Of a stretch of DNA of 64,000 nt, positions 6,291 to 63,610 are shown in pieces. Position 1 is the stretch's first letter. Each line of letters starts with the position of its first letter. Made by a program: the position numbers and the translations under genes. The stretch lies in NCBI RefSeq assembly GCF_040938485.1, contig NW_027270949.1:3534001-3598000 (forward strand), given 5' to 3'. Source of the stretch: Diadema antillarum. Its lineage: Eukaryota. The notes below the pieces were generated by a model. That model saw only the letters and a list, made by a program, of their open reading frames with translations. It had not been told where the DNA came from and did no database searches.

Positions 6291-7421
6291 ATGACCACCA
6301 GTAGGACCCTCCGACAGACCGACTTTTTACCGACTAAATTTTCTGGCAGCCGACTAGATTACAATGACTGTACTGCCCATATTTTGACCTTTGAAGACTA
6401 TTTAGACGCCCATGACATTGACTCGGACAAAGCTGGCAACTTGACGACTATACTTAAGACTTTCAAGCGGACATTAGAGGGACAGGCCAGACTCTGGATA
6501 GACAAATTGACTTTCACTACCTATGACGACCTAAAGACGGCTTTCACTAGGCGATTTAGCCCCGCCAAATCGACTTTTGCTAGGGTTACTGACTTTAACA
6601 CCATGACTATGACTGATGGAGAGAGTGTCGAAACTTTTCTCCAACGACTCAGACAGACTGCCTCCTACATAGACTATGGGGAGAAGCAAATAAAGGACCG
6701 TTTACTTGCTGCACTGACCCCCGACTGTCGTGCCGCCATTCTTATGGCATCGCCGACATCAACGACCACCCCTGACGAGATAGCCGCGAAAGCGCAGCTT
6801 TTCATAGATCTTAGGACTGACACTACCCCGACAAAAGAAGTGACATTCGCAACCCAAGACGATGTCGACCTCCTAAGTGAGGAAATTTCCTCCCTTAGAT
6901 TTAAAACCGAACAGAAAGACTCCCGAGGACGAAGACGAAATCGACATTCCCAACACAATGACTCTGACCGCAGTACCAGCCGCAGCGCTAGTAGGACTCG
7001 ACATAGGGATGACCACAGCAGACATGAACGTAGTCTAAGTAGGGACCGACATCATTCTGACTACAGACGTAGTTTAAGTAGAGACAGACGACATGATAGT
7101 AGAGACAGACATCCTGGACGGCGCTCTCCTTCTCGTGATCGTTATCGGTCACAAAGCCGAGGACGCGACCAACGGTCTCGACCTCGATTCGCTGGCAAGT
7201 GTGACTATTGTCACATTCCTGGCCATTTTTGGAGGGATTGTCGGCATAGGTTGAGAGACATTGAACGCGAGAGACGACCCCAATATTACGGACCACCCCC
7301 ACCCCACAGACAACAATACGATGACTATAACCGACATCATCATCGACATCAACAACAACAACAACATCATCTACAATACACAGGACAGTACTTCGACACA
7401 CATCCCCAGGGTTTTCATTAA
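6291..7421 (+). CDS. gag: Ty3/Gypsy Gag (376 aa)
   Basis: Retrotransposon capsid-like motifs (PTKFSG, LEGQARLW, ESVETFLQRL), Arg/Ser/Asp-rich segment and CCHC knuckle CDYCHIPGHFWRDC. Confidence 0.93.
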   Translation: MTTSRTLRQTDFLPTKFSGSRLDYNDCTAHILTFEDYLDAHDIDSDKAGNLTTILKTFKRTLEGQARLWIDKLTFTTYDDLKTAFTRRFSPAKSTFARVTDFNTMTMTDGESVETFLQRLRQTASYIDYGEKQIKDRLLAALTPDCRAAILMASPTSTTTPDEIAAKAQLFIDLRTDTTPTKEVTFATQDDVDLLSEEISSLRFKTEQKDSRGRRRNRHSQHNDSDRSTSRSASRTRHRDDHSRHERSLSRDRHHSDYRRSLSRDRRHDSRDRHPGRRSPSRDRYRSQSRGRDQRSRPRFAGKCDYCHIPGHFWRDCRHRLRDIERERRPQYYGPPPPHRQQYDDYNRHHHRHQQQQQHHLQYTGQYFDTHPQGFH

Positions 7422-7457
7422 GGGAGGAAAATAGAAGCGCTCTCTATTCCACCTCCC
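7409..7457 (+). promoter_or_regulatory. -1 programmed ribosomal frameshift signal
   Basis: G_GGT_TTT heptamer in gag phase (7409-7415), 6-nt spacer, then hairpin GGGAGG/CCTCCC (7422-27 with 7452-57) and AATAGA/TCTATT (7430-35 with 7443-48). Pol is in the -1 frame. Confidence 0.8.
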
Positions 7458-10400: not shown

Positions 10401-12208
10401 ACATACGAAGACTTAAGACAGAACAAGAGACATCTCCATTCTTCAAACCGATCTATGACTTTCTAGCCCACGACATATTACCTAGTGACAAAAAGGCAGC
10501 GAAAACAATTCAGCTGAAAGCTGAGCAATACATCCTATGTGATGGTGTATTATTCCGCCTTTTCTTTGACAAGACTGACGACTTTAAACTACAACTTGCT
10601 GTACCAGAATCACTGACTGATGTTATCATTTCACAATACCATGACAACCTACTTAGCAACCACCAAGGAACAATGCGCACTTACTTGACAATACGACGTA
10701 ATTACTATATGCCACAGATGTTTGACAGGGTACAAAACTATGTCAAAGCTTGCCTGAGATGCCAACAGTTCCGTGGCAAACCAGACAAGTTACGCCCATT
10801 CCACACTCGTGTACCCGACTCCTATCGACCCTTTGACAGAATAAGCCTTGACTTTAAGACCATGCCTACCTCGGCAACTGGTTTTAGACATTTGATGGTC
10901 ATTTGTGACGAGATAACCCGCTTTGTTATTTGTGCCCCACTTCGCACTCTCGATGCCGAAACAATTTGTGAGGCATTGATACAAAAGGTTATCTGCATTT
11001 TCGGACCCCCTTCCTGCCTTGTGACTGACGCAGCAGCCGCTCTCACAGGCAAACTACTGACTACACTGTGTACCGCCCTGAACATTGATAGGAAAGTGAT
11101 TAGTGTTGCAAACCACGGCAGCTTACAAGTTGAACGCCACATTCGAACACTCTCTGACTTCCTCAAGGTGAACCTGAACCAATTTGGAACAGATTGGGTT
11201 CGGTTTATTCCCACTACTTGCTATGCCTACAACTCATTCTCTTCCCCTCATCTAGGTGACCACTGCCCTTACCAACTTGTATTTGGACGAGACCCCCCAC
11301 CCATGACTAACTTGACCTTCAACCCAATGTCTGGTCTGACCCAGACTTATGACGAATATGTTTCCCATCTCAAACGGAAATTTGACCAGATCTCTCACAC
11401 GATGCTTTCGCTCCAAAGGCGAACTCAAGACAAGCAGAATGTCGCCATTACAAATAAACTACGACAAACTCCTATTTATTCAGTAGGCCAGCTAGTCTAT
11501 TTGTACAAGCCAACTTCTTCCTCCCTCACTGCAAACTCGAGAAAGATTGCAGCTGCTTGGGTCGGACCTTTAGTTGTGCATGAAGTGCTCGATAGAACCC
11601 ACTTCATTCTCTCCACTCTCAAAGGTGAAATTCTGCGAGATGTCTTTAACTACAACAGGTTGAAACCCTGTTTCATGAAAGCATCGGATGAGAGGAAACC
11701 CATCACCCACCTCCAGCGACTGAAAGAGGCACTTGGAAAGACAGTGACCCCTGGAGACGGTGAGACCTCTGACAAACCATCAGTAAATTTTATTGATGAG
11801 CATGACCACACCCCTCCTGAATGCACTGCTGATCACATCATGTGCTTTCAGACGACAGACCCAATCCAAACATCTGACTATGTGACATCCATCACCCCTA
11901 ACAACGGAATAGCCGCCCCAACCCCCCTACGACAAACTGACCTTGAACGACAATTTGACCTTCTAACAACTGCCCCTTCTGACAATGACATAACCCTACA
12001 CCGAGGACGATTTAAGAACGGGCAATTGCAAGTACTGACTTCATTCATTAGGACTCCGACTGACGGTAATAACCCCAAAGAGGTTAGATTTTGGTGGAAC
12101 ATAGGACTGTATACAGACACAAGTAACTTGATAAGACAAATTCTGATTGAAAGAATCATTCCTGTCACGGGAACACCAAAGAAATATATGAAACGATTAT
12201 ACACATAA
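7409..12208 (+). CDS. pol: Pol (PR-RT-RNase H-IN plus C-terminal extension), entered by -1 frameshift from gag
   Basis: The frame is open upstream of the track start at 7619 and includes protease FILFDSGAT. RT VVTDFRYLN, VIDLKSAF, AHHDD, YMGH; RNase H YSDTS, TELEL, VDH, LADFLSR; integrase HHCC and D(SLDF)-D(VTDA)-E(QVER). Confidence 0.95.
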   Translation, partial: GFSLREENRSALYSTSQNEHLRPRDGQKLKSTYLGTEDVDLQLTSNNFVKGRIDSGKHIFILFDSGATKTLISDRYVKSTPHLSNLKRQSVTPTRFKLGNGQFLEARTAIKFRVTIQGYKFEISALVVENLVGVDLILGNNTLSDVDGTLTFRDHRFKIKRRRIPFSPTSKVKIEPFESRLMTLQGHTPAHLRNSDVILTSNDYLSRHCPSTMVVKLTKGATQIIVTNTTDRPLHFSKGRAIAFLDTTNPVRVTEPLPVDNITMTLTDNTHALYSTQLDTADSNLDNQTRQANLDKYPHLDPNDPIANMTEDQIIRAHIDLKDSVLSPSEKNELIQILKDNRPAFSLYGELSSCPNFEVDIHLTNDEPFFIRPYFATEPDKRQIEKELTKLVKLGILEVGHQAYTSPVLLIAKKDKTEKRVVTDFRYLNSRIRRINHPFPLLTETLKRIGHAKTKVMSVIDLKSAFHCIPLSKQAQQYTGIASYHGGKHYYYKRLAQGLNISPGLFQAKIDNILGTIPNSRNFCIAHHDDIILFSPDKTSHKLHLTKVLQALSDNGLKISPKKCKLFTNDVDYMGHRITINSDGEACFRPLNNRCASIHNITRPKTPRQVRRLIGAVNYVAGFFPNIQSILKPLHQLTRKKKKFKWTDEHERAFNKIKDLMTKPPILHMPTNTGRFTLYSDTSRTATGSYLTQIINGHERVIGYYSKVLPDACQRYSVTELELFGLLINITAFKHLLRGCEFNAFVDHSSIVQILKSKDEPSTTRLQKLILKLSEYSFKIAYKKGTELVLADFLSRIPSDKHAEIDHVVPISFSLVDNHDLDHLNPIQPAERPVTRAFAKKMGISVPNLHPDRPKTNNHNNIDTDTAPPPEPIITPAPNNNTPHSHEPANQRSALDTPPDLPPTTTHFAPHDHNRPHTQKPTPNAPKQTEPRLVDKQNESPCTQTYRDVPPDLFTAPKPLISNVEQIVAPHIPKQHDIDKVLDLIKRKIIRDYNLPIDIRRLKTEQETSPFFKPIYDFLAHDILPSDKKAAKTIQLKAEQYILCDGVLFRLFFDKTDDFKLQLAVPESLTDVIISQYHDNLLSNHQGTMRTYLTIRRNYYMPQMFDRVQNYVKACLRCQQFRGKPDKLRPFHTRVPDSYRPFDRISLDFKTMPTSATGFRHLMVICDEITRFVICAPLRTLDAETICEALIQKVICIFGPPSCLVTDAAAALTGKLLTTLCTALNIDRKVISVANHGSLQVERHIRTLSDFLKVNLNQFGTDWVRFIPTTCYAYNSFSSPHLGDHCPYQLVFGRDPPPMTNLTFNPMSGLTQTYDEYVSHLKRKFDQISHTMLSLQRRTQDKQNVAITNKLRQTPIYSVGQLVYLYKPTSSSLTANSRKIAAAWVGPLVVHEVLDRTHFILSTLKGEILRDVFNYNRLKPCFMKASDERKPITHLQRLKEALGKTVTPGDGETSDKPSVNFIDEHDHTPPECTADHIMCFQTTDPIQTSDYVTSITPNNGIAAPTPLRQTDLERQFDLLTTAPSDNDITLHRGRFKNGQLQVLTSFIRTPTDGNNPKEVRFWWNIGLYTDTSNLIRQILIERIIPVTGTPKKYMKRLYT

Positions 12209-14905: not shown

Positions 14906-14983
14906 TTACTTCATGATACGACCACCTTCGCCACTCTCAATCTATCCTGATATATTTGACGGTTTGGACAACTTGAACGCGAT
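14906..14983 (+). CDS. Gene 1 (GRL101/LGR-like GPCR): last LRR exon
   Basis: tttctcacatAG / GTAAGA boundaries, 78 bp, phase 2-2, YFMIRPPSPLSIYPDIFDGLDNLNA. Paralogous to 56898-56975. Confidence 0.85.
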
Positions 14984-16412
14984 GTAAGATTTTTCTCTCT
15001 TTTTTTATACAACTTTGCATTTCCTTGCTTGGAAGAACATAGTGTCCCAAAGTGTGAAACGCAATGTTAAATAAACACATTGTGAACACAGTGTGAAATC
15101 TCTTCACGCTGTTAAATTTGAGTGTTTTAACAATGTGATCACATTGTGAAACATCACATTTCAATGTGAAGCAGCACATTGTCATGTAAACACTTTGTTT
15201 AAAAAAAAACACAAAATAAGGGTGTAAAATCATCTTTACACCGTTAAAATCGAGCGTTTTCACATAGCCAATATGTGAACATATTTTGAGCACATTGTGA
15301 GTCACCCGTATTCTTTCCAGCAGTCGGTTTCAGCGAGTTTGAATGATCACAGTGTTGTATAATAAACCTTTAATTGATTTCATCTAGATTCCGTTTTGTT
15401 TGTTATCGGTTCTGCTTTGATTAGAGACAGCACATTTTGTCACCATTGATTAGTTAGCGCTATAAGTTCTCATCATGGTCATACGCAGGCACTGGCAGGG
15501 GGTGGGGGTGGCCAGGGGGAAGGGGGAGGGAGGCAGGAGCTGGAGGAAGATGGAAAAGAGGTAAAGAGATAACGGATCCTACTATTAAGACATACATGAT
15601 GCATTCAGCCAAGTGGGAAGAGGATATTCCCCTCTCACCCGCTCCCCATTTCGGTCGACTTTCGGAGACTAATAGTGATACAGTGAGGCACTCACTACAC
15701 AAGAGATAACATAAACCGGGATTTAGCCATACGCATTTTCTCTCCGTCATCTTTATTTTCGTAGCTCTAATATCACGAAAAGGTTTCCAACATTTAGCAC
15801 CCGATATTTGCAAGAATGCAAATGCTCCCTATTATGGGAGGATCTATACCCCGTCGACACCCTCCCAAAGTTCGGTCCACTTCCATAGTGCCATATTAGT
15901 ACACAAGTACAAACTGTAAGACGCACACGTAAAACAAGAGGTAAAGGATACCATGATTTAGTACCCCCCCCCCCCCGCCATATACTAATTCATCTGATTT
16001 GGGGGATTAACAACTTTCAAAATATTGTTGAATTTCAATTCTAAAAATGCGAAAGTTCCCTTGGGTGTGACGGGGGGGGGGGGGATATACCCGGTACCAC
16101 ACCCTCACCCGCTCGGTCGCTGCACTCCCATAACTATTGTTGGCGTGTTCATCCCGAATATCTGAATATCGAACGTATTCTTGCCCCCTTCACTCAGCAA
16201 AGTATCCTGTGTACATTTATGGTTTCAATTGTTCTTCTGGCTATATGATAGTTTTAACTTATGCTTACAGCAATATTTGGTTACACGTCAGACACATGAC
16301 TTGGTCGGATGTTCCTGTTACCTGCAGCCTCAGTTGGGTTTTTTAATGTTCATACATGGCTGTCGAGATATTAATGATTTGTGCTTGACATTACATTACG
16401 ATTTATTTTCAG

Positions 16413-17499
16413 TTACGCCTTCGACCCACGCATATGTTGCGTAGCTCCAGAGAAAGCTGTGTGCACTCTCCGTCTACCAGCCCACCCGCTCTTCACCTGC
16501 AGACTGACTTTTCTGCAGGATCTTCCCACTAAAATCTTCATCTGGATTCTTGGAATCAGCGCACTTATCGGAAACTCCTACGTAATAATCCAGCGACTGT
16601 TGGCCAAGGTTTCAAGAGATACGGCTAAAGTCCAGTCTATTCTAATTTTGAATCTTGCCATCTCTGACTTCCTGATGGGAATCTATCTCCTGATCCTAGC
16701 AATTATGGACATCGTCATTTCGGATTCCTACTTCTGGGAGGGGAGGGCCGAAGAGTGGCGAACCAGCAGCATTTGTCAGGCGGCGGGCTTCATCTCTGTA
16801 CTCAGCAGCGAGACGTCGGTTTTCTTGATTACCATCATCAGCCTCGATCGAGTAATTGCCGTTCTCTTTCCATTCAGTGAACGTCGCCTTAGTGTCAAAT
16901 CAGCTCACGTGGTAGTAGGAGCGACCTGGGGATTAGCCCTCCTCCTTAGCATCTTTGCTGCTGTACTGAATTATCTCAACCCCGACGCTTATGGACTGAG
17001 CGACGTGTGTGTAGGCCTGCCATTGATTCGCAAGAATTCTGGACTCATATCTGTGGTTGATGAAAACACACTCACAGAGATTGGTTTTGTGCTCCATAAG
17101 ACTGTTGCGGCGGCATCGGAGTCAACTTGGCTGTTTTCCATCGTCCTGTTCCTTGGAGTCAACTTCTTTTGTTTCTCCGTCGTACTCATCGCCTACATCA
17201 TCATCTTTATCTGGGTGCGGGTTACCAGGAACAAGGCGGGACGCAAAGACAGTGAAGGAGCTGAAATCAAGATGGCTGCTAAAATGTCACTCTTGGTCGG
17301 TACGGACTTCTTTTGCTGGATGCCCATCATCATTCTAGGAATACTAGTCCAGAGTAACATCGTCACACTCAGCTCGGACGTCTACGCCTGGCTAGTGGTC
17401 TTTGTCCTACCTATTAACTCATCAATTAACCCTTACCTGTACACAATCGTGGACGCCACGACCCGTAAACAGAAATTGAAAGGAAAAACCAGGCTGTAA
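16413..17499 (+). CDS. Gene 1: hinge plus 7TM terminal exon of a GRL101/LGR-type class A GPCR
   Basis: Acceptor ttattttcAG at 16411-12, phase 2. DPRICC hinge, LNLAISDFLMG, SLDRV, DFFCWMP and NSSINPYLY motifs. Stop at 17497-17499. Confidence 0.93.
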
Positions 17500-37270: not shown

Positions 37271-37658
37271 TGGTACAGTATTGGTGGAGATGAGAATTGG
37301 GCTTTTACCTTTTTGTGAGATACCAAGAAAACACTTATAATATAGGACAGAGCATACCATTTTAAGAGGAATCCAAAGTTTATTTTTTGATGAAAATCGG
37401 GTTTGGAATTACTGAAACATCCAAAAACAAAGTAAAACAAAGCGATCGTAATAAAGTGTGGGTCCCACACTTCATTAGAATCGCTTTTTTTTGATATCTC
37501 AGCCATTTCAAAACCAATTTTCATCAAATAAACGTTGAATTCCTCATAGAATTACATGCTCTTTCATATGTCATAAAAGTTTTTTCATGATTTCCCTCCC
37601 CAAAAAAAAAAGAGTTAGAAACCTGAAATTAGGTCTCAACCAAAACTATACGATCCCT
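37271..37658. mobile_element. TTAA-flanked (Kolobok-like) non-autonomous element; inverted relative of 47551-48231
   Basis: TGGTACAGTATTGGTGGAGATGAGAATTGGG...ACGATCCCT|TTAA, with long reverse-complement similarity to 47551-48231. Confidence 0.75.
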
Positions 37659-38643
37659 TTAACTAACCTTGTCGTTATCTCATCAAACAAAGTGTTGTAT
37701 CAAACGTTGTGTCTGCTTGTCGTCCGACCATTTAGTCCTTTCTACCATATGACTACTCTTGTTGATATTTAGTTGAAAAGAATGAAGAAAAAGTATCAGC
37801 ATGCAAACAAGTTTCTATCCTCAGATTCCGTTACTTTTTTCGAATTGGCAGTATTTTGTAACATTTTCTCCGGATTTAGGCAGACTTTATGAATTTCTTT
37901 AGTTCTAAACATTCTTTGACATTTTAATTTTAGTGAAATTCGAAGTTGCCATATATGACGTCTAGATGATAAATACTGCAGAAAATTAATTCTGCAGACC
38001 TTAGTAGGATGAGGAGTGTATCCAGTGTTAGTTTAATCCGATAATCCCGTTACAATGGTTGCCATGGGTTTTTAAAACCCCTTTTTGTTCTATGCACAAT
38101 TACGTTTGACTAAGAGCAACTTTGTGAATTGACCTTTACCTTCAAAGAGAAATTTTCTTAAAAGCTGCATTCCTGCATGTTTCTTTGCCATCATCTATTT
38201 GATGGATTAGGAATGTATAATCTTGATGAGATGCGTACAACTTTCAAATGAGAATCTCCTCTCTCAGAATTTGACCCATACTGAAGAGAAATATCATCTT
38301 ACGTTAATGTGAATTTTGTAATGTACTTTCACAGAAACAAGTGTATCAGCCTCTAAAATCAGTAGTAATTAAGTCATTGATGTCAAACTGAGAATGGAAC
38401 TATCTGTATGGACGATAGAAAATTGATGAGGGGGTGAATAAACAAAATATTCTGTGAGGAGACAGGGTTGACAGTGCCCAATGATGGTGAACGAAACAAT
38501 ATTTGTCCTCTACATAGTGTAACTACGACAATATGTGTGGATTATATTGGGTTCAGTTTGTTTAAATACTATAGTAAGGGCTTGTTAGGAGCGGAAGAAT
38601 GCACCTTTATCCGGTTAACGTAATGAAAAGTAATACTTTCTAG

Positions 38644-38724
38644 TCATAACCTTTCTGTTGATTGGTGTTGCTGTTTTGGTTCAATCAATCTCTCTCAGCT
38701 CTCCAAATATCAAGCAGTATTCAG
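38644..38724 (+). CDS. Gene 2: candidate signal-peptide exon
   Basis: Encodes ITFLLIGVAVLVQSISLSSPNIKQYS and ends in phase 1, compatible with the exon at 41801. The donor G|GTATAA is weak, and the upstream ATG (38623) is out of frame by 1 nt. Confidence 0.5.
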
Positions 38725-39771
38725 GTATAACACAAGGAATCTTGTATCATCATACAGGAGCTATTGATTACGTCGTGCTGCACAGTGTCAAGGCTATAAA
38801 AGCCAGTAAATGCGCTTTATCACCCTTTCTTCTCTCTTTTTAATTTGGAGAAAACTAAATTAGAGTAATTTGCATATTATCTTTTCACTGCTATGTAGAG
38901 TAGAGAGAAGGCGAATAATGATTAAGTGACACTGATTTTCATTTTGTTGGCGTGTTTCGAAATAACCTTCATGATAGCGAATTGTGAATAATGGAAGGAG
39001 CAAGCAGAATATAGACTGCGTTTGATAACCTTTTCTTCATGCCAATTCAGATCATAATTCTAATTACCCAATAGACCGCACTCAAATTCACTCAAATTCT
39101 TGTCGTGCTTTGTTTACAATAGAAGGCCTTAACAGCCACAAAGCTTGCCAGATAGGCTTGCCCTACCTAATTAGAAAAAAAAAAATGGCAGGTGAATACA
39201 AGCGTTCTCTTCCAGACTGTATAGGAAGAGAAACATCCATGAACTTTAATGCATTACATAAGCGGTCTATTGTAAAGGTTTCTTAGGTAAGAGGTAAAAT
39301 TAAAGCAGATGAGAGCTATGAATGATCGATGAACAATAATTGGTTCCCTCTGCGCATGAGAACGGAAACGATTACGTAATGCTTACAGGTAATTAGACAC
39401 GAAAAAATGCTTCACATATCGCCATGAATGACGTGCAAAAGTGTAATGGACCTATACAACTCATGATTATGAGTGCCAGGACGAACAGGTTGGCACCACA
39501 ATTCAAAGTAAGGTCAATATGAAATCTTTTTTGAAAATCAGTTGCAAGTTTTTGTTTGTTTGTTTGTTTGTTTGTTGTTGTTGTTTTTGAAAATCATGGG
39601 AAAGGTTTATTATGGAAAAAAAGATGAGGATATTCGACGAATAATAGCATCGGCGCGTGTCCCCAACGTATGTCCGATGTAACGTCTTTATAAGCCGTAA
39701 ATACACAAACACACACTTACATACTAGTATACATGTCACATAAGCTATGTATATTCATAAAGTGAAAGAGA

Positions 39772-39783
39772 GCGAGGGAGAGG

Positions 39784-39851
<68 letters not shown>
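39772..39851. repeat. (GA)n microsatellite
   Basis: Direct reading. Confidence 0.95.
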
Positions 39852-39853
<2 letters not shown>

Positions 39854-41800
39854 AGATGTTTCGATCCAAATTCTAGACCTGTATAGCCACTCCCTGGGAT
39901 GTCCTGTATGGGACTGAATATGTTTGTGTTGCTAGCGCAAATTCATTATTTCTGTCCTAAAAATAGTACGTGCTGAGGATGACACCAAAATTAACGATAA
40001 CAAGGGTAGTGACTGAGAAGATGTCCCAGGAAGCACAGTTATGATTATACTACAACTATGATTTATTGGTGATATAAGAGCAATAGTTATCATAGCCTCT
40101 GCGAAACCACTATCTAATTGATAATAAATACCAATAGAACAGGGTTGCATTATTTTGTTTCCATATAAAAACATAACATTTACAAAAATCGAAACACAAT
40201 TGCATTGGTACATTTGTACATTTTGAATGGAAGGATCATACTAGGAAGCACACACGAGGCTTGTTGGAAACGATCCCCTACAAACAATTATTACATTTCA
40301 ACTGAATAATCATCAGACAGGAAATTCATTCTGCAATTACTCATCAGCTCGATTGTAATTTGTGTCTGAAAGAGAACTTTAAGGTCTGTTGGTCGCCGAG
40401 GTTACAGTGTGGACAATCATCCGTGGACCTTGCCATTATCTCGATTAGATTGAGACTGAGACACTGACTTAAAACAACGAGAGAAGGAGGGGAGTGATTA
40501 AAAGGGGCAGCGAGACACGACACGGATATAATTGTTCCAAAGAATTAGGCAGATTGTAGATTTGTGTGAGTGCGTGGTCGAGTGTAACTGAAAGGGAATG
40601 AAATTGAGTCGGTGATGATGGATTGTTTACAAGCGATAGATATCATTTCAATAAAATTGGGTCACTATACGTATTCCATTACAATAATCATCAAAGCTCG
40701 TTAGTGTTTACTGTCCAACCCATCATACTTATCATTAATTTTTTAGAACGAAGTTAGTTAATATCATGAGTAATCGCATGGACAGATAATGATATGTATA
40801 ATTACAGGCTTTTTAGCGAGAGCAAGAGACTATAGAATACATCGGCCTTTAGGATCTTATCTATAAGACATTAAATAGAGCGGAATGCTTGTAATCAATG
40901 TCATAGACAGAGCAAAGAACATCGACAGGAAAACGATATTTAGTAACATTTCTCAGTCCATTTTATAACACGAGTCTTATTTCATGTGTGGCATTAATGG
41001 GTCCAAAAGTGAAAATTGGCACACGCCTGCTGTTTACTATTAAAGGTGACGTCGTGATCCTTTGGTATTCGTCCTCTGTAGATTTTATCCCACAGACGTC
41101 TTAATTATATTTACAGTAAATTCACGTGCATCCAAGACTGCTCTCGAGTGTAAATCAAAAGAAATTAGACCAAACGAGATATCTATTACAGATAACATAT
41201 AAATCAAGCCTGAGTATCATCATAGTATACGCTCCGTTTTCTTCACTTTGATACTGCGATGCCACAGCTGAAGGGGTCGGCCTTGTTGCAGATATCAGGG
41301 CATTCCCTTTATTGTCACTTTGATAAAGCAGTCCTTGATAATCCTTGAGTATTGAGTGCCATTTCAAAGGGCAGTCTTGTTTTACTCGCTGGAAAGGATT
41401 CTTTTATATCTACTATTAAAGCTTAAGTTGACTTTAAGTGCGAATTTAATCATAATAATGTAATGGATAAGAATAGCAAAGTGAGGAAATAGAAACAGAA
41501 TACGTTCTTATGGTTATAATCATAATATATGTTGTATGATATCTGTGTGTGTGTGTTTGTGTATGTGTGTGTGAAGTTCATGTTTATGTTTGGGCTGGTT
41601 TGATTTTATTGTGTTTTTTTTTTTTCTAATCTATGCAACCAATGATCACTCACACACAATTTAACAATGTCGAGCGGTCGGCTTCCTGTAGTCCAACGAT
41701 AACATGATGAACAGACACCACTCCAACAAGTGAATTTGTCAGAAGATTTGAACTCTGATATGAAGGTTTAATAATTCCCTGCCTTGTTTGTATCCTGTAG

Positions 41801-41922
41801 GAGGCAGCACTCACTGTGAAAGCTTTCGGCATGTTCAGAGCATCTCTTCCCCGAACCTACCAGAGCGGTACCCGCCGGACTTCCGGCGAGAGTGGTCAGT
41901 TGAAACAACAGAAGATGAACAG
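41801..41922 (+). CDS. Gene 2: CUB domain, N-terminal half exon
   Basis: cctgtAG/GTAATC, phase 1-0, GSTHCESFRHVQSISSPNLPERYPPDFRREWSVETTEDEQ (CUB ISSP..YP..W pattern). Confidence 0.8.
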
Positions 41923-42407
41923 GTAATCACTCAACAATAATCTTGATATTATTATACTCACTGTACAAGCTGCACTTACTGAAAAAAAACCCAAACCAAA
42001 ACACAAACCCTTTGTCACACATATGCAAACAAAATAATAAACGTACTACTATTATAAGATCACTAGTATTCCTGTATACCATTTTACTAGTTTGTTATGC
42101 ATCAACGAAATAAATAAATGCGATATTGACATCAGGTTCAATGAAAGAGAAAAGTTGTCCATTGTCTTGACAACGCTAGAAAATTAAGCTATTTGAGACA
42201 CATTTTGCGTTTTCGTGAGACAAAGTTTCATTAACCGAATATTCGAGGAAACATAGCAAGACGGCACCCAATAATATAAATTGTTTCCAATTATACACGG
42301 CAACGTGCATAATCGAAATGTTGGGATTGGGGTATGGTCATCAGATTACAACGACGTAACCATTATCATGAAAGACGATATCATTGTGTATAAGCAGTAG
42401 CCCAGTG

Positions 42408-42634
42408 GTCATCCTACGAGACCGACACCCACGAGTCGCAGGGCCCACGAGATCAACATTGAAAAAAAAAAAAGGTCCATGAGTGAGTCATACAGCTCAT
42501 GAGCTCGAGACTAGGCACATAAGGACCATGAGTGCGACAGTACGCAAACAAGGCCCACGAGTCTGATACCAGGCAAAAAAAAAAAGGCCCACTGGTTCGA
42601 CAATGGGTAAAAAGCTCACGAGACCGACATTACA
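42408..42634. repeat. Array of CCCACGAG/TTCGACA-type motifs (transposon subterminal-like); second copy at 53826-54115
   Basis: Both loci begin GTCATCC.ACGAGACC.ACAC.CACGAGTC and reach GACATTACA. The second is followed by inverted motif copies. Confidence 0.6.
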
Positions 42635-43689
42635 ACCGTTACACTGAGCACATCTAGCTATCTTCATTGCTGTGTAAAATGTGTAGTTTACATGTGTGTG
42701 TGTTTTTTAACTGTCAATATTTGTATGCGTACACGAGCGTCTGTGCGTATGTGTGACTGGTCAAATAAGAAAACATATTCATAATGCAGCCCAACATTGC
42801 ATTCAATTCAACTTTTCCAACAACTAACCCTTGCTATAAATTTTCAGAAAACTCGGCCATTAGATAGCAATGTGTCGTCGTTTTTCTTTTTCTTTTTTGG
42901 CACTGAAGATTTGTGTAAGGTCAGCTTGTCAAGTAGCGTGACATTGATTGAATTAATTCAAATAAACGTGAGAGCTTTCTCCCTAAAATGAGCTTGGATT
43001 TGAGGTAGGATAAGAGATAGGTGAAATATCCAAAGAATTATATTGGTTTTTTTTTTCATATTGGAGTTTGTTGTTGTTGGTTTTTTTTTCAGCCGAATCA
43101 AGTAATTTTGTAATTCTATCTGTCTTGAAATCAGCAAATTTATCAGGACAGCGTGGTACTAAGTGTACTATTATAGATTCTTTATGTTTCCCACAAAAGT
43201 TCAGTGATATTGTGACAAAGAGATGTCGTAAGGGCTGAGTAGCAGTTTTAACGCAGGCTTGCGCAGCCTAACCTTAACGTTTGTATAGTCACACACTATA
43301 GTACCCAGTCCTGTACGATCTAGGATGGATAAATACATAATTGAAGTATACCAATCAGGTTCCAACAGTGAAGACAGTAAACTTGAGGGCATGGTTTGGA
43401 AGGAAACACCATCCGCAAAGTCAGGTCACGTAATGTATCATGCTTTAGTATCGTGTTTCAACGTCATTAAAGCTGTAGATTAAAACTTGCATGATTGGTC
43501 AAGGCACAATAAGCCAGGGAAACAATTATAGTCGCGATCAACGGAAGAAAATGGCTCATTAGCATCGCGTGTGATTCACTTTTCAAATCAAGAACTTCGT
43601 TACCTGTGTTCGTCTGTAATCGTGGTTCAAAGGGAAAGCAATGTCATACAGTATCGGTTCTAAAAATATCATGATTATGATGACAATGA

Positions 43690-44120
43690 TGATGATGATG
43701 GTGATGATGATAATGATGATGATAAACAACATTTATATAGTGCCATTTATTTGTAGAACGTTCAAAGGCTCCCAGCTCCCGAAATACGTAACCCGTTCTT
43801 AAGTTCAGATTTGAAGGTACAAGGTTGTTTACAATTCGAACTTGGATTGGTAGAGCGTATCATGCACAACTGTATGAGGATCTGGAAGAAGGGCATGAAT
43901 ATAGTGTGTATGATTATGTCTAGGTTTTGAATTGCAAGTTTGATCATAGGTTTGGCAGTGATCAGTCTCCAGAATGGTAACCCTGACCTGTCTACTTTGT
44001 ACCAGCATGTGAATTTACATTGAAAGGGTGATCTAAAGGCAGTCACAGTCACGTGACAGTCAATGACATCTACAAAGAGATTATTCACCACCGGAAGAAA
44101 GTTACGTGTACTCTCCTAAG
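43690..44120 (-). mobile_element. Probable decayed L2/CR1-type LINE 3' end
   Basis: Minus strand IRS...TFKSELK-like remnant, then GCACTATATAAAATG and an (ATC)n tail. Confidence 0.4.
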
Positions 44121-44497
44121 ACGCTTTAATTGAGGGCATCTTACGTGTCTTATAGGTAGAGAATAACTCTCATCAGAGCATGGAATCAAAATAGAACACG
44201 TCATTAGAATCTTATTCTAAGCTGAAATATCCCCCACAACAATCTTTCTTATAAGAGACGCCCCTTAAAGAATGTTGGTCACTCAAAGTTATTGAATTAT
44301 CTTACTTTTGTAATGATCGAGGTTATCTTTAGTTTATGAAACTTTGAAAATATTTCCTAAAGCAGCATTAACGATACCACATAATATGATTTGAGATGAA
44401 AATGCAAAAGGTTAATGACATTGATAGTGCTCCATTTGATAAGCTTGCCACTTCTATCCTTTCTATTTCCGCTGTACTCCAGTCGACATTTCTTTAA

Positions 44498-44959
44498 AGG
44501 AGACCTCAGGATTATTTTCAGACGTTTACATTTCAACAATATAAATTAGATATACTGGGAACAGAGTTTCAGAATTTATAGTGATTGGGAGGAGGAATAA
44601 GAATGTTTTCAAAATTGATAACGAATCACAATGAACAAGAATGACATGGCAGCTTCACCATATACGAATGCATGAGTTGGGGCTCAAGGAAGCAGATCAA
44701 AAGAACAAAAATGCATTATTTCTACGTTGGTAGACTTGTCAAGCAAGCAGCATTGTTCATGAAATTACACTGCTACATTTTCTGAAACATGTGCATCTCC
44801 TATGTCATCATCCTTGTTCAATGAAATTTGTTTTGGTCATTTTTCAGGGTATTGATTTTTCTGTTCAAGAACCACAATAAATTCCACAAATCTATACAAG
44901 GAGCTGTGGTGTGTGAACTATATGATGTGCAATTATGAAAAATAGTCTGGACTTCCCCT
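44498..44959. mobile_element. Kolobok-like non-autonomous element (462 bp)
   Basis: TTAA|AGG...CCT|TTAA termini, with a reverse-complement homolog at 47092-47545. Confidence 0.75.
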
Positions 44960-45266
44960 TTAATAATAAAGGAACTGTTTTTAAACGAACAGGGGTGCAA
45001 TAATGTGAGGACGGCGACAAGGCGTAACACAACTGAGGATGAACATTATAAGGTCATGCTATCTTGAGTACTCTTTATCCTATGATCTCTAAGACATTCC
45101 CTAGAGAATGGATAAAAATAAAATTTTGTGGCAAGGAGAACTTTTTATAGTACAAGTCCCCTTTTCAGCGAGGTATATACCACTATGTGTCTGTAATAAT
45201 GAGTTTTTGAGGGATTTTCTGAGTTTCTATATGTTTTCTTGACACTTTGTTAAACTGTTTCTTAAG

Positions 45267-45492
45267 GTTACGATACAAGTTAACGTTCTGGAGATCGAGC
45301 GACCTTGGGACACACTCACAGTAAGTCACTGGTTCACCCACAATAACAGCAACGAAACTTTCAAGCTGTCAAGCGGCAATGTGACGTCACTGTTTCTACC
45401 GAATGGCGGTCACACAACAATCGAGTTTTGCAGTGACGTCATGAGGGAGTTTGATGGTTTTGACTTGGATGTGTACTCGTCTCTCATTAATG
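45267..45492 (+). CDS. Gene 2: CUB domain, C-terminal half exon
   Basis: tttcttaAG/GTAAGA, 226 bp, phase 0-1, VTIQVNVLEIERPWDTLTV...TTIEFCSDVMREFDGFDLDVYS (D.L and F.SD...GF motifs). Confidence 0.85.
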
Positions 45493-46170
45493 GTAAGATT
45501 TTTAAAGTTTCCATTCCTGGCGATCCTTTTGATATAACATGTCCTCTTTAATCAAATATAGTTTTTAGTTTAATACATTTAGCAATATTCTTTAATCCCC
45601 GTTTGAGAAAGATGATTTAGACACTGTTTCAATGAATTTCAACTGCTCAGTCAGGCTACACGCAGGGTGTGTTTATCCTTCCTGAAAAAAGGGGACATTG
45701 TATTATTACGTAAAACGCAAACGCCCCAACGCCAGGTAAACATTTCGTTTCTGTTGTTTTTCTTAAAATAAACAAATATGAAGTTATGTGTCTTTTGTAT
45801 ATAGATTCAACAGGTCTACTATACCCGTCACAATCTGCAATTAGACGCTAATCTTAACATCGATACAACGAGAAACTTTCTCTGACCATGTCATAGCCAC
45901 CCAGTCCCTAGCTTTTTGCACACGATCAGTAGAAATTGTTAGGTGATAACATCATCAGCTCAGTCATGTCGAGTTCACATGATACTGTTTTACGAAATTT
46001 CCTTGCTGCGCTAATTGAATTATTTTGCTCTTACTTATCAAGTTAAGTTTTAACTTTTCGGGAATTCCCGCTGAGTAAAAGAGAAATTCGTCTATATTAT
46101 GTTGAAGTATTATTAACGGCAAATAGATACTTTTAACAGACTATCTGTACTATGTTATTTATGCCACCAG

Positions 46171-46296
46171 CCACGTGTGGAAGCGATAATCTCCACGGCT
46201 TCGTGTGTTCGTCGGGACTGCAGACGATCAGGACTGTAGCCAGGTGTGATCACGTGGTAGACTGCCATGACTTTTCCGACGAGGTTGGCTGCGGCA
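46171..46296 (+). CDS. Gene 2: LDLa module 1 exon
   Basis: ccaccAG/GTGAGT, phase 1-1, TCGSDNLHGFVCSSGLQTIRTVARCDHVVDCHDFSDEVGCG. Confidence 0.9.
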
Positions 46297-46841
46297 GTGA
46301 GTATCCGCCTACACTTATCCAGTGGATGAAAATCACAATATTAAGACACAATGGTCCTTTACGCACACAGTTACACTTAATAATTTTTAAAGACATTTTT
46401 CTCTTTTTGAGATTTTTTTTTTGTTTTCTCTCGCTGTATAATGATGATTATAAGTATGTATGCATGAGCGAATTACTTACAATTGTGTGTACATTTGTAG
46501 GTCATTTAATGCTTAAGTAGATAATTAGAAGGTTGTTCTTTACTGTAACATTAGCTCCAAATGTTGTCCTTGACAAGAGATAATGTCAGATATTGACTTG
46601 TTTGGTAACCGTTGTGTTCGGTATTATTCTTTCAATGAAACTCCTTCCAATTTTGTGTGGTCATAACCTGACTTGGAGTTATTCCATAACAATCATAGCA
46701 CAACAAAAAAAAATTAACAACGACAACAATAATAACAACATTACACTCTTTAAACATGTCGAGGTAGGATGCAATGTGGATTTAAAAAAAATCGAGTGAA
46801 CACCTTTTTTGGCGCTAACATCGATTCGCAACGTTTTCCAG

Positions 46842-46952
46842 ACTGCAGTGCTGACTTCTTCGCGTGTCGAGGAAGCGATATCTGCTTGGCAGCGGATTAC
46901 CAATGTGACGGTGTCAACGACTGCCCTCTATCGGACGATGAAGAAAACTGTG
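46842..46952 (+). CDS. Gene 2: LDLa module 2 exon
   Basis: ttttccAG/GTGAGT, phase 1-1, CSADFFACRGSDICLAADYQCDGVNDCPLSDDEENC. Confidence 0.92.
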
Positions 46953-47091
46953 GTGAGTTTTACCAGAACTTTTAAAAGAAGACAAATATTCTTTATTCAT
47001 TCTTATATTACTTCTAAAATGCGCATTTAGACAATACGGGATCAATAAAAGGAAAAAAGTTTTTAAAAAGATTAGATTAAGAGATGATTAT

Positions 47092-58272: not shown

Positions 58273-61200
58273 GGGATGGCATCCAGCGCCATACCTGTTC
58301 CCTCCAATGAGTGCTGGGGTCATCTGGGTCATGTTCGGCTGTCCTAACGTTAGAGTTCTTGTGAATCATGTTTCCGGTTGGGGTGAAGATCCCTCAAACT
58401 GCTGGAGAACAACAACTGAAGGGCACGGCGGGCTGATTCCTGGTGACTGTCTAGTGCTAAATGGGAATTAATGGAGTGGGGCCCCTTAGGTGGTTGGCTG
58501 GCATACTTGTCACCTTCCGGCAGCTCCTGCATCCTGTCTCGCCTCAAGCCGTCTCGACTTCGTCTTGCCTCCAGCCGTCTCGACTTCGTCTTGCCACTGG
58601 ACCCGGCGTCTCAGGACGAGAGAGTGAGGCTGATCCTGCGCAAGTCTCCTTCACTTTAATCAAAGTTCAGCGAAAGTCATGACATCGCCAGCTTGGCAAC
58701 ATTGAAGTCCTGTGGCGATAGGGGAGCGGTGAAGCAGCAGGTGCGGATATACTGGGAGCTGTAGTCGTAAACCTACACACAGGCGGCTTAGGACATGTGG
58801 TCGCTCTTCACTGGACCGAGGCAGCAGTGGAGTTCGGCAACCTTCTGAGCGACCGAGCAGCCCTCGTGAGGATTGCTCTGCTCGCCTCCTCAGCAAGAGG
58901 ACGGGGCTAGAAAAGGTGCCCTAAACATAGCCTGCCTCACCTTACCCTGGCCAGCATACCGCGGCTGGCGGGGATCCCTCTTAGCGGTCGAAACACAAGA
59001 AAAAAAGAAAACAAAAGCGCTCACCCAAGCATCATGGAATGTGAGAACTCTACTTGATGACACAAAAGCAAGCAGGCCAGAGAGACGCACTGCGCTGGTC
59101 GCCAGAGAACTGGCTCGCTACAATGTTGACATAGCTGCTCTTAGCGAAACACGGTTAGCAGAAAAAGGTCAGTTAACTGAAATTGGTGGTGGCAACACAT
59201 TCTTCTGGAGTGAACGTAGCAGTGGAGAGAGAAGAGAGGCTGGTGTTGGATTTGCTGTCAAATCCATCCACGTGCAAAAACTAGCAAGCATCCCTGCGGG
59301 ACTCAATGACCGTTTGATGTCAATGCATCTCCTACTTGAAAAGAAGACAAGTGCAACCATCATAAGTGCCTACGCTCCGACCATGAAAAACCCTGATGAG
59401 GTCAAGGACAAATTTTATGAGGATCTTTATTCTCTCATCGCTTCTACAAAGTCTGAGAAGCTCATCATCCTTGGTGATTTCAATGCTCGAGTAGGGGCCT
59501 GACCATCATGCCTGGCACAATGTACTAGGAAAACATGGCATTGGAAATTGTAACAGCAACGGGCACCTCCTCCTCAGATTTTGCTCCTCTCACGACCTAG
59601 TAATCACCAACACCATGTTTCGACTACCGACTCGGAACAAGACTTCATGGATGCACCCTCGCTCGAAGCATTGGCATCTTATTGACTATTTATCGTCAGG
59701 GTAAGGGACAGGCAGGACGTGAGAGTGACTAAGGCTATGTGTGGTGCTGACTGCTGGACGGATCACCGCCTGATCATCTCAAAGATGAACCTCCTAATCC
59801 AGCCCAAGAGAAGGCCACAGGGCCAGAAAGTAAAAAAGAAACTGAATATCAACAATCCCAAAGACCCCAAGAAGCTGCAAGACTTCCAAGAACACATGCA
59901 TAACCACCTAGCAGACCTTCAGCTAAACCAATCTAGCATCGAGGATCAGTGGGCAACCTTTAGGGATGCTGCTCACTCTGTCGCCCTTGAATGCCTTGGC
60001 CCAGCCACTAGGTACCATCAAGACTGGTTTGATGAAAACGACACAGAAATTCAGGAGCTCTTAGATGCAAAACAGAACCTTCTACGTGTACATCAGAATG
60101 ATCCCTCCAACGCCCGCTGCAAGGTCCAAGTAAAACTACGCCACATGAAAGACTCCTGGCTTAGTGCCAAGGCCGATGATATCCAAAGATTTGCCGACAG
60201 AAACGACATGAAGATTTTCTGTGATACCCTGAAAGCAGTCTATGGACCAAAACCGTCCGGATCATCCCCACTTCTCAGTGCTGATGGTTCTACGCTGCTG
60301 ACAGAGAAGAAGCTCATCCTAAAAAGATGGGCTGAACACTTCAACAGCGTATCAAATCGACCTGCCCAGATCAACAACGAAGCCATCGATCGCCTTTCCC
60401 AGGTGCCCATATATCACAAGCTTGATGTGCCCCCTTCAGAGAAGGAAAACGACATAGCCATCACACAGCTGTCTAGTGAGAAAGCCCCAGGCTCTGATTC
60501 CATCCCTGGAGAAGCGTACAAAAAGGGTGGCCCAATCGCCGTCATTAAGCTCACCGAGATGTACCAATCCATGTGGAGCAAAGAACAATTACCACAAGAG
60601 TTCAGAGATGCTACAGTTGTCCACATCTACAAACGGAAAGGAAATCGTCAGGTTTGTGACAACCATCGAGACATCTACCTCCTGTCTATAGCAGGCAAGA
60701 TCCTGGCCCGTGTCCTCCTCAATCGCTTACTGGAACATCTGGAGCAGGGTCATCTCCCTGAAAGTCAATGCGGCTTTCGTGCAGGTCGAGGGACCATTGA
60801 CATGATATCGTGATCTATACACAACCTTTGTTGATCTGACTAAGGCCTTCGACACGGTTAGTCGTGAGGGACTCTGAAAAAATTATGGGAAAGTTTGGCT
60901 GCCCATAAAAGTTCATTACAATTGTCCGCCAGTTTCACGATGGGATGACTGCCAAAGTTCTAAATAATGGTGAACCCTCCAAGGTCTTTCCAGTGACAAA
61001 TAGAGTCAAGCAGGGATGTGTCCTGGCCCCGACACTATTCAGTATGACGTTCTCGGCAATGCTCTCAGACGCCTTCAAAGACTGCGAACCTGGCGTCAAC
61101 ATTATGTACAAGTCGGATGGAAAGCTCTTTAATCTTAGGCGCTTGAAGGCCATCACGAAGGTGAAGGAGACCGTCATCAAAGACTTCCTGTTTGCCGACG

Positions 61201-62170
61201 ACTGTGCACTCAATGCCAATGGTGAGCACGAGATGCAGATGGAGGTATGGACATATTTTCCTCTACCTGTGACAACTTCGGCCTTACCATCAGCACCAAG
61301 AAGACTGAGGTGATGTTCCAACCAGCCTTAGGGAACCAGTACCACAAACCACAAATCCAGGTGAATAGACAGACTCTCCAGGCAGCAAAGACCTTCACCT
61401 ATCTGGGCAGCACCCTCTCCAATTTTGTCACAATTGATGCTGAGCTCAACAACAGGATCTCTAAAGCCAGCAGTGCTTTCGGGAGACTCAGAAAAAAAAA
61501 ATGTTTGGGAGAGGAGAGGGAGCAGCCTTTCAACAAAGCTGAAAGTCTACAGCGCAGTTGTCCTCACCACGCTTCTCTATGGCTGCGAAACTTGGACTTT
61601 GCACCGGAGACATGAGAGGCGAATCAACCACTTCCATATGCGATGCCTCCGCAACCTCCTTCGCATCCGCTGGGAAGACAAAATTCCGGACACAGAGGTA
61701 CTGAAGCGGGCAGGCATCCCTAGCATTATTACCAAAATCCGCAAGGCCCAGGTGAGATGGGCAGGCCACGTCTCCCGCATGTCTGACAACCGCATCCCGA
61801 AAAATTTCTTCTATGGAGAACTCGCTGATGGAGAGCGCAAGGTAGGAGGAGAGAAAAAGCGCTTCAAAGACAAGCTGAAGCTCTACCTAAAAGACTTCTC
61901 CATCGACACCGAGTCCCGGGAGACACTTGCCGCAGATCGCCCTTCCTGGCGCCACGCTATTGCTGTAGGGGCTCGTAGAGCAGAGGAGCAGCGTGTCAAG
62001 CAGGCAGAGCACAAACGCCAGATGCGAAAAGCTAGAGCAGCCAATCCCAACAGTTTACCCCCTAACCATTTCGCCTTATCTGTGGGAGAGGCTTTCTTGC
62101 CCAGATTGGCCTCATCAGCCACGTCCGGACCCTCGAGCTAATTGATGTCATTGGTCATCCTCGAGAACAT
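58273..62170 (+). mobile_element. Near-full-length decayed RTE-clade (BovB-like) non-LTR retrotransposon in the last intron of gene 2
   Basis: APE domain [37 protein letters not shown]; RT ESQCGFR, DLTKAFD, KQGCVLAPTLF, LFADDCAL; C-terminal RWAGHV.RM. Broken by stops and frameshifts (~59500, 59700, 60810, 61250, 61500). Ends are approximate. Confidence 0.9.
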
Positions 62171-62472
62171 ACAATATAGTCAATAGTAGAATTGTAGAAT
62201 TGACTTCATCTAAACGATATACCCTTACACCTACCTGCACATACGTATAACAGAGAAATAGAGAAATTAAATCTAACCAAAATAAAAACACAAAGGGTCT
62301 ATGCAGATTAAAACATTTCTAACTATAATAATGAGATTATAGTTTGTTTTTTCATAGTATTGATACATCATCAACATAATCTAGATTGATCCTTGTTAAC
62401 GTGTGATTGGCTGAGATGATAGTTTTTATACTTTATAACGTTAGTGATTGCATATTCTATTTTTCTTTTCAG

Positions 62473-63610
62473 AAACGTCTACGACCCACGCATATGTTGC
62501 ATATCTCCAGGAGACTCTGTGTGTATGTTAGGTGAACCACCTCACCCCCTCTTCACCTGTCGAATGACTTTCCTACAGAATCTTCCTATCAAGATTTTCA
62601 TCTGGATTCTTGGGATCAGTGCACTTATCGGAAACTCCTACGTAATTGTTCAGAGATTGCAAACTAAGTTTTCACATAACGCGGCCAAAGTCCAGTCCGT
62701 CCTAATATTGAATCTTGCCATCTCTGACTTCCTAATGGGAATCTACCTCCTGATCCTAGCCATTATGGACATCGTCATTTCGGATTCCTACTTCTGGGAG
62801 GGGCGGGCCGAAGAGTGGCGAACCAGCAGCATTTGCCAGGCGGCGGGTTTCATCTCTGTACTCAGCAGCGAGACGTCTGTTTTCTTGATTACCATCATCA
62901 GCCTCGATCGAGTCATTTCCGTTCTCTTTCCGTTTAGCGAACATCGTCTTAGTGTCAAGTCGGCTCGTGTGGTAGTAGGAGTGACCTGGGGACTAGCACT
63001 TCTTCTCAGTACCTGTGCCGTCGTACTAAATTATCTCAACCCTGACGCTTACAGCCTGAGTGACGTCTGTGTGGGCCTGCCATTGATTCGCAAGAATTCT
63101 AACCTCAATAGCGTCGTTGACGAACGCACATTCAATCAGATTGGTATTGTACAGTATGCCACCGTTGCAGCAGCATCGGAGTCAACATGGCAGTTTTCCA
63201 TTGTCTTGTTCCTTGGAGTCAACTTCTTTTGTTTCTCCGTCGTACTCATCGCCTACATCATTATCTTTATCTGGGTGCGGGTGACCAGGAATAATGCGGG
63301 ACGCAAAGACAGTGAAGGAACTGAAATCAAGATGGCTGCTAAGATGTCACTTTTGGTCGGTACGGACTTCTTTTGCTGGATGCCCATCATCATTCTAGGA
63401 ATTCTTGTCCAGAGTAGTGTAATCACACTCAGCGCGGACGTCTACGCCTGGCTAGTGGTCTTTGTCCTACCTATTAACTCATCAATTAATCCGTACCTGT
63501 ACACCATTGTGGACACCGTAACCCGTAAACAGAAATCAACACGGCCAAACACGGGGAATATGCGCAATACTCAATCTAATTCTGCTAGTTCGAAAACTTA
63601 CGCTGCTTAA
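62473..63610 (+). CDS. Gene 2: hinge plus 7TM terminal exon of a GRL101/LGR-type GPCR
   Basis: Acceptor ttttcttttcAG at 62471-72, phase 2. DPRICC, LNLAISDFLMG, SLDRV, DFFCWMP and NSSINPYLY motifs. Stop at 63608-63610. Confidence 0.94.

Follow-up and report, generated by a model that had tools for sequence, protein, structure and literature searches.

G protein-coupled receptors with leucine-rich repeats (LRRs), known as LGRs, respond to glycoprotein hormones, bursicon, R-spondins and relaxin-like peptides. In the RXFP receptors the LDLa module is essential for activation, and ligands of the insulin/relaxin family have been shown for type C1 LGRs and proposed for canonical GRL101. GRL101-type receptors were first found in Lymnaea stagnalis, and this branch has been orphan since 1994. 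The group constitutes the type C2 LGRs, with many starfish "GRL101" entries in a dataset published in 2025 (PMC11863921). Veenstra (PMC8286064) recognized one GRL101 ortholog per ambulacrarian and proposed insulin-like growth factor (IGF) as the ligand, with basic residues binding the LDLa modules. Here, we describe a gene of the sea urchin Diadema antillarum, located within a 64,000-nt stretch of contig NW_027270949.1 (positions 3,534,001-3,598,000; referred to below as the window, C61:3534001-3598000). In our reading, to which we assign a probability of roughly 85%, positions 31739-63610 of the window (+ strand) constitute a gene of 15 coding exons for an 849-aa orphan type C2 (GRL101-like) LRR receptor, composed of a signal peptide, a CUB domain, two LDLa modules, a cap followed by ~10 LRRs, a hinge and a seven-transmembrane (7TM) domain; it is the last of four tandem paralogs and belongs to an echinoid-specific clade within a lineage-expanded echinoderm family. 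The receptor appears to be an undescribed domain variant of a known orphan type C2 LGR kind, and the gene itself is already present in RefSeq.

The exons were identified using tblastn with the closest full-length relatives, combined with a scan for stretches without stops that are flanked by AG and GT. A regular expression for LRRs applied to stop-free segments missed the 72-nt exons, which were recovered by the splice-bounded scan and homolog tblastn. Fourteen coding exons were distinguished on the + strand between positions 41801 and 63610, each with an AG acceptor and a GT donor and with no internal stops. Their phases run 1-0-1-1-1-2...2, their lengths sum to 2483 nt, and the codons at the nine junctions from the LRR N-terminal cap (LRRNT) to the 7TM exon encode L, L, L, L, I, L, L, L and V, so that Leu, Ile or Val occupies every LRR junction, as the initial annotation of this DNA had proposed. 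The same 14 exons (95-100% identity) make up RefSeq protein XP_071483700.1 (829 aa, "uncharacterized protein"; P0249), which bears out the phase-consistent join. The length of ~860 aa originally expected has to be revised: with an additional exon at 31739-31805, the gene would have 15 coding exons and a coding sequence of 2550 nt, specifying an 849-aa precursor. The gene had also been described as hidden from the list of open reading frames (ORFs). Its exons are indeed mostly absent from that list, as the only ORFs of at least 60 aa in the 38-64 kb region are the 7TM exon (an open frame of 388 aa, 62444-63610), LDLa pieces (two further frames contain LDLa) and retroelement frames; RefSeq, however, already predicts both the gene and its allele. 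The exons were searched one by one, with XP_071483700.1 as a stand-in for the 14-exon join, and are as follows:

31739..31805 (+), proposed first coding exon, opening with ATG and closing at a phase-1 donor (CGT G/gtatga), encoding MGRTPLVCRVTFVCLFIGSHFR and contributing the initial base of a Gly codon, signal-peptide-like
41801..41922 (+), CUB exon 1, phase 1 to 0, GSTHCESFRHVQSISSPNLPERYPPDFRREWSVETTEDEQ, alone Pfam CUB E 0.013, corresponding to residues 3-47 of XP_071483700.1
45267..45492 (+), CUB exon 2, phase 0 to 1, invariant motifs E..WD.L...H and FCSD...GF
46171..46296 (+), LDLa module 1, phase 1 to 1, Ldl_recept_a E 4.8e-07, five Cys, cage D..DC.D.SDE retained
46842..46952 (+), LDLa module 2, phase 1 to 1, Ldl_recept_a E 1.8e-07, six Cys and the full acidic cage DGVNDCPLSDDEE
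48782..48953 (+), putative Cys-rich LRR N-terminal cap and first LRR strand, phase 1 to 2, RCPRGCSC...C...INC, tblastn against a Diadema paralog E 1e-10 to 2e-11
50340..50411 (+), LRR exon 1, 72 nt, phase 2 to 2
50864..50935 (+), LRR exon 2, 72 nt, LRR_8 E 2e-4
52256..52327 (+), LRR exon 3, 72 nt
53011..53082 (+), LRR exon 4, 72 nt
53555..53629 (+), LRR exon 5, 75 nt
54641..54715 (+), LRR exon 6, 75 nt
55347..55418 (+), LRR exon 7, 72 nt, corresponding to residues 427-450 of the allelic RefSeq model (P0165)
56898..56975 (+), LRR exon 8 and C-terminal cap, 78 nt
62473..63610 (+), last exon, with a short Cys-rich hinge, a complete rhodopsin-type 7TM domain, the C-tail and the stop, 7tm_1 E 2.6e-23, motifs DRV, CWMP and NPYLY

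Pfam analysis of XP_071483700.1 revealed a CUB domain at residues 13-110 (25.1 bits versus a threshold of 21.4, covering positions 8-108 of the 110 in the profile), two LDLa modules, LRR_8 (E 1.7e-30, residues ~257-450) and 7tm_1 (E 3.3e-22, residues 504-794). Searched alone, CUB exon 2 gave no Pfam match and CUB exon 1 only a sub-threshold one; NCBIfam, a prokaryote-oriented library, returned no match. A CUB subfamily profile built on a 13-sequence alignment retrieved cubilin (E 8e-27), C1s CUB1 (E 4e-18), MASP-1/3 and neuropilins from the PDB. Residues Y26, E54, D58 and D100 are invariant in this alignment (the latter three nearly so in a 24-sequence alignment), and HMMER pairs them with Y17, E45, D53 and D98 of C1s, which we take, from the literature on C1s, MASP and cubilin, to be the Ca2+ site gripping a Lys or Arg of the ligand. 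These positions point to a CUB of the Ca2+-binding subtype. Lipoprotein-type ligands, as initially suggested, would be conjecture; the sequence itself displays an intact Ca2+-site signature in the CUB as well as both LDLa modules. The domain resembles the CUBs of cubilin, C1s/C1r and MASP in its profile matches (E 8e-27 to 6e-17) and in the conserved Tyr/Glu/Asp/Asp positions; those CUBs are fused to a protease or an endocytic receptor, whereas the present one is carried by a GPCR, has an FCSD Cys (the only Cys invariant in the subfamily) and is devoid of the canonical disulfides, i.e., the four Cys of a two-disulfide CUB. Throughout the echinoid subfamily, LDLa1 has no third canonical Cys (consensus F.C.SG.Q.I...ARCDG..DC.D.SDE..C), and in the window an extra Cys at residue 121 gives this module (residues 121-159) an odd Cys number. 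The LRR cap is assigned, as a prediction, on its CPxGCxC pattern and homology.

An AlphaFold2 model of XP_071483700.1 obtained with 24 homologs (pLDDT 76, pTM 0.62) comprises an all-beta CUB, beta strands of the LRR cap region from residue 207, an LRR strand every ~24 residues and seven transmembrane (TM) helices. In a Foldseek search of the PDB, ranks 1-35 were all LGRs, with TSHR, FSHR, LHCGR and LGR4 aligned over ~590-680 columns (E 1e-20 to 1e-16). The 7TM exon is likewise closest to known LGRs: among PDB sequences the E-values of TSHR, RXFP1, LHCGR and FSHR range from 3e-29 to 5e-23, with 2e-10 for LGR4 and 1e-12 for the next receptor class. It contains the class-A activation motifs DRV, CWMP and NPYLY, and among the columns invariant in the family are D596/R597, C752/W753/P755 and N790/P791/Y794. 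Pfam, the CUB profile, the structure model and Foldseek thus agree on the initially proposed order of modules, from CUB through two LDLa, the cap and LRRs to 7TM.

Comparison with described receptors places this architecture among the LGRs. An LRR arc lies directly N-terminal to the 7TM domain in one polypeptide, the LDLa modules precede the LRRs on separate phase-1/1 exons just before the cap (as in type C LGRs), and there are two of them, i.e., more than one, as in type C2. A single LDLa is the sole non-LRR ectodomain module of type C1 receptors; the head found here consists of a CUB and two LDLa. The following relationships were recognized: (i) with the type C2 LGRs (GRL101) the receptor has in common LDLa before the LRR arc, a delta-rhodopsin LGR-like 7TM domain and its orphan status, but Lymnaea GRL101 carries twelve LDLa (PMC8286064) and the present protein two, with a CUB ahead; (ii) with RXFP1 and RXFP2 (type C1) it has in common LDLa, ~10 LRRs and 7TM (E 5e-29 between the 7TM exon and RXFP1), but these have one LDLa and no CUB; (iii) TSHR, FSHR and LHCGR (type A) give the best whole-model structural match (LRR and 7TM, E 1e-20, TM-target up to 0.72), and TSHR also the best sequence match of the 7TM exon (3e-29), but they have no LDLa or CUB and possess a long hinge with a tethered-agonist segment, in contrast to the short Cys-rich hinge leading into TM1 here. 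In Foldseek, RXFP1 aligned over ~340 columns at rank 35, the solved RXFP1 chain being without most of the ectodomain.

The 160 kb around the window was fetched and each exon peptide was mapped, which distinguished four intact + strand units on contig C61, in agreement with the original suggestion of a tandem array:

C61 ~3,438.3-3,466.9 kb (+), unit A, 15 exons
C61 ~3,472.5-3,495.3 kb (+), unit B, 15 exons
C61 ~3,507.8-3,551.5 kb (+), unit C, 15 exons
window 14906..17499 (+), 3' end of unit C, with the LRR8 exon at 14906-14983 and the 7TM exon at 16413-17499, the other 13 exons lying upstream of the window
window 31739-63610 (+), unit D, the receptor gene studied, last unit of the array

All four units have the 15 exons in the same order and keep the ATG, all AG/GT sites and open frames. 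No further copy was found within 60 kb downstream of unit D. A broken 7TM fragment with TAG/TAA stops (C61:3500537-3501563, mirrored at C154:1469514-1470591) lies between units B and C and is a pseudogene relic inside the array.

Nei-Gojobori estimates of the ratio of nonsynonymous to synonymous substitution rates (dN/dS) for unit D against units A, B and C are 0.32-0.38 for the CUB, 0.20-0.24 for LDLa, 0.16-0.24 for the LRR exons, 0.19-0.21 for 7TM and 0.44-0.80 for the signal-peptide exon. The gene is thus under purifying selection that includes the CUB, whose exons, being also present in every unit, are constrained coding sequence travelling with the gene. Between unit D and units B and C, dN is 0.21-0.22 in the LRR exons versus 0.08-0.09 in 7TM, while dS of the 7TM exon (0.41-0.44) is ~3x below that of the LRR exons (1.2-1.4). 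The low dS suggests either gene conversion of the 7TM exon or different duplication histories of the two halves of the gene.

The 5' end required correction. A signal-peptide exon had been placed at 38644..38724 (+). The hydrophobic frame of this exon opens only at 38634, the frame from 38644 meets a TAA at 38647, there is no ATG (the earliest possible start is a TTG at 38658), and in the comparison of the four tandem units the region 38600-38780 had no counterpart in units A-C. Another candidate, 31937-32021 (MIFHHH...), derived from a hydrophobicity scan, is located outside the conserved upstream block described below and is not conserved in the paralogs. Comparison of the regions upstream of CUB exon 1 revealed one block common to all four units, comprising 22 codons with a conserved ATG and the phase-1 donor GTATGA; in the window it occupies 31739-31805 and would encode MGRTPLVCRVTFVCLFIGSHFR. 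The leftover G of this exon and the GA of CUB exon 1 form a Gly codon. The block occurs in 10 copies in the genome, at gene distance upstream of a paralog 7TM exon wherever both could be placed; an extra copy is located at C61:1361055. A signal peptide is also predicted directly before the CUB in paralogs and orthologs of Diadema, Lytechinus and Strongylocentrotus. The exon 31739-31805 is therefore likely to be the first coding exon; with its ATG, phase-1 end and conservation, it would supply the signal peptide, move the gene start ~6.9 kb farther upstream than initially annotated and give the 849-aa product.

The conserved first exon is absent from all RefSeq models of the array. In all four units TACGATG comes immediately after a pyrimidine tract that terminates in AG, and the signal-peptide exon may therefore be internal, following an exon of the 5' untranslated region (5'UTR); an untranslated exon farther upstream of 31739 is thus possible. 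Between 17.6 and 41.8 kb, the MTG start of XP_071483700.1 can be matched to a single site, ATGACTG/gtaagg at 24916-24922; this may be an exon of the 5'UTR, with the automatic model mistaking its ATG for a start. For the start peptide of the allelic model, MEINSV..., no position was found in the window. The longer upstream block of units A-C has TATAAAAAG ~130 nt before the ATG, and the upstream region of unit D (31560-31740) has only ~50 nt in common with these units.

The allelic model, XP_071489384.1 (854 aa; P0165), is located on the second-haplotype contig C154. This allele is intact and spans 38.9 kb from the first exon to the 7TM exon, compared with 31.9 kb in the window, which points to haplotype-specific insertions. 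Two D-like copies were found, one at C558:1513011-1552226 and the other, whose 7TM exon contains a single TAA, at C154:1033391-1068166. For the sister units, RefSeq offers truncated or misframed models: in XP_071483694.1 (589 aa, unit A) the N-terminal peptide resembles out-of-frame CUB exon 1 and the LDLa and early LRR exons are skipped, and XP_071483695.1 (557 aa, unit B) begins inside CUB exon 2 and skips LRR exons 1-5.

The receptor belongs to a large family. A protein search with the 7TM frame yielded 795 cluster representatives at E<=1e-30, and the 7TM exon has 103 matches at E<=1e-20 in the 1.75-Gb two-haplotype assembly. A region-restricted search for homologous proteins gave 562 proteins, with a precomputed CUB in 26 of the best 120. 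Nearly all named relatives are echinoderm RefSeq predictions, for which RefSeq uses the name "GRL101-like", and all 13 CUB-positive representatives that could be named are from echinoderms. Their heads contain 1-11 CUB-like modules (local CUB hidden Markov model) and up to seven LDLa stretches (Pfam), with a C-type lectin domain in one protein. Proteins of the same architecture occur in Lytechinus and Strongylocentrotus. One starfish relative, XP_022095240.1 (P0005), has 2 CUB and 3 LDLa modules and is listed as GRL101.e, type C2, in the 2025 dataset (PMC11863921). This variation in module number is in line with the modular invertebrate LGR subfamily suggested at the outset.

A tree was constructed from the 7TM regions of echinoderm family members (72 rows, all from this family and hence containing no canonical GRL101, RXFP or glycoprotein-hormone receptor as a reference). 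It contains an echinoid-only clade of 29 rows (support 100), with a Diadema-only clade of 10 rows inside it; the ophiuroid and asteroid expansions are separate from the echinoid clade. Unit D is sister to D. setosum XP_072175790.1 (95% identity), its one-to-one ortholog. The initial annotation had allowed that the architecture might already be catalogued, with one-to-one orthologs and a known ligand; RefSeq entries and the D. setosum ortholog do exist, but no ligand accompanies them.

Several observations weigh against the proposed receptor. In the CUB the canonical disulfide cysteines are missing, C8 and C98 being the only Cys in residues 1-120; LDLa1 lacks the third canonical Cys, with its acidic cage kept; and the Pfam LRRNT model does not match the LRR cap. 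At the 5' end, the RefSeq models of both alleles, starting with MTG... (XP_071483700.1) and MEINSV... (XP_071489384.1), are devoid of a signal peptide and of exon 31739-31805; the hydrophobic region of the signal peptide encoded by this exon is short and follows an Arg; the splice junction 31805/41801 and the expression of the gene are predictions; and a TATA-containing upstream block common to units A-C is absent from unit D. The putative type C2 placement is drawn from the PMC11863921 dataset and RefSeq names, and the ligand, the G-protein coupling and the role of the CUB and LDLa modules in activation are inferred.

By analogy with other LGRs, the LRR arc of unit D would hold an extracellular ligand, probably a protein or peptide. 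The CUB and LDLa modules, with the acidic residues of their Ca2+ sites kept, could also contact basic residues of the ligand in a Ca2+-dependent manner; alternatively, they might relay binding to the 7TM domain, like the LDLa of RXFP1. The 7TM domain would then activate a G protein. It is also conceivable, but unlikely, that the protein has an endocrine role as the receptor of a single conserved insulin/IGF/relaxin-like peptide, the CUB/LDLa head serving only to tune affinity. Such a role would suit the plan of LDLa, LRR and 7TM in common with RXFP1/2, the 7TM exon being about equally near to RXFP1 and TSHR, as well as the proposal of IGF as the GRL101 ligand (PMC8286064) and the classification of starfish relatives as GRL101-type (PMC11863921). 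It is at odds with the numbers: a single conserved GRL101 per ambulacrarian (PMC8286064) contrasts with the large echinoderm expansion to which unit D belongs, with its dozens of copies, class-specific clades and tandem arrays. Moreover, the ectodomain diverges faster than 7TM (dN values given above), and the heads are variable, with their 1-11 CUB modules and sometimes a lectin domain. Because of the class-specific expansion, the tandem arrays and the faster-evolving ectodomain, we favor a diversity of ligands, be they environmental, conspecific or non-self, over a single conserved hormone.

It is improbable that unit D is a recently silenced or non-functional copy, with intact exons and a lost promoter or no usable signal peptide. 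The missing upstream block conserved in units A-C, the long interspersed nuclear element (LINE) in the last intron, the inconsistent 5' ends in RefSeq, a look-up of sequencing runs with the 7TM exon that listed no RNA run, and the broken 7TM copies nearby and on other contigs would fit such a history, but the 15 exons all have open frames and canonical splice sites, dN/dS is well under 1 against every paralog, the D. setosum ortholog is 95% identical and the allele of the second haplotype is also intact. Finally, it is very unlikely that the CUB exons, with or without the exon upstream of them, form a transcript or gene of their own and that the receptor starts at the LDLa exons: in the RefSeq models of units A and B the CUB exons are left out or misread, a 3.3-kb intron lies inside the CUB and ~10 kb separates exon 1 from CUB exon 1, but the phases match exactly (CUB exon 2, 0 to 1, is followed by a phase-1 LDLa exon), all four units keep the position, frames and splice sites of the CUB exons under the constraint noted above (dN/dS 0.32-0.38), and RefSeq joins the CUB to the receptor in unit D, its allele and many homologs from four echinoid genera.

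Several repetitive elements are located within the array. The last intron of unit D contains the following feature:

~58350..62200 (+), degenerate non-LTR (long terminal repeat) retrotransposon, outside the protein, Exo_endo_phos E 1e-10 and RVT_1, approximate boundaries

It comprises an endonuclease ORF and several frameshifted reverse-transcriptase pieces on the same strand as the receptor gene, and its GC content is 0.48-0.50, compared with ~0.35 in the flanks. The intron between LDLa2 and the LRR cap carries a ~290-nt element (47941-48226), inverted with respect to an upstream copy at 37271-37557 (90% identity), with a weaker direct match at 37363-37662; it is probably a short interspersed repeat. 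The LRR7-LRR8 intron of unit C (16.6 kb) has retroelement-like ORFs at 837-3062 (-; 741 aa) and 6291-12208 (+; 376 aa and an uninterrupted 1529 aa), which by eye look like gag/protease and gag/pol of LTR-type elements.

The locus alone opens no long-standing question and represents a solid but unsurprising member of a large echinoderm receptor family. Its analysis provided a corrected 5' end with a putative signal peptide for XP_071483700.1 and its paralogs, and showed the models of the sister units to be faulty. A CUB with a Ca2+ site ahead of LDLa was described in no paper that we found, though it is widespread in echinoderm RefSeq predictions; when we searched the literature for LGRs or GRL101 receptors bearing a CUB, none was retrieved, the results for "CUB" including amphioxus adhesion GPCRs. 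As a tentative generalization, more doubtful than probable, the echinoderm CUB/LDLa-headed LGRs might form a hitherto undescribed class of Ca2+-dependent protein- or pattern-sensing GPCRs with chemosensory, conspecific or immune roles, in which interchangeable CUB, LDLa, lectin and SRCR heads would pass ligands with basic residues to a shared LRR-7TM core, and in which the arrays would diversify specificity while the 7TM exon is kept homogeneous. In sea urchins, what is probably the GRL101 branch has expanded as tandem arrays whose genes are intact and selectively constrained, and the four close paralogs described here constitute a defined set for deorphanisation and domain swaps.

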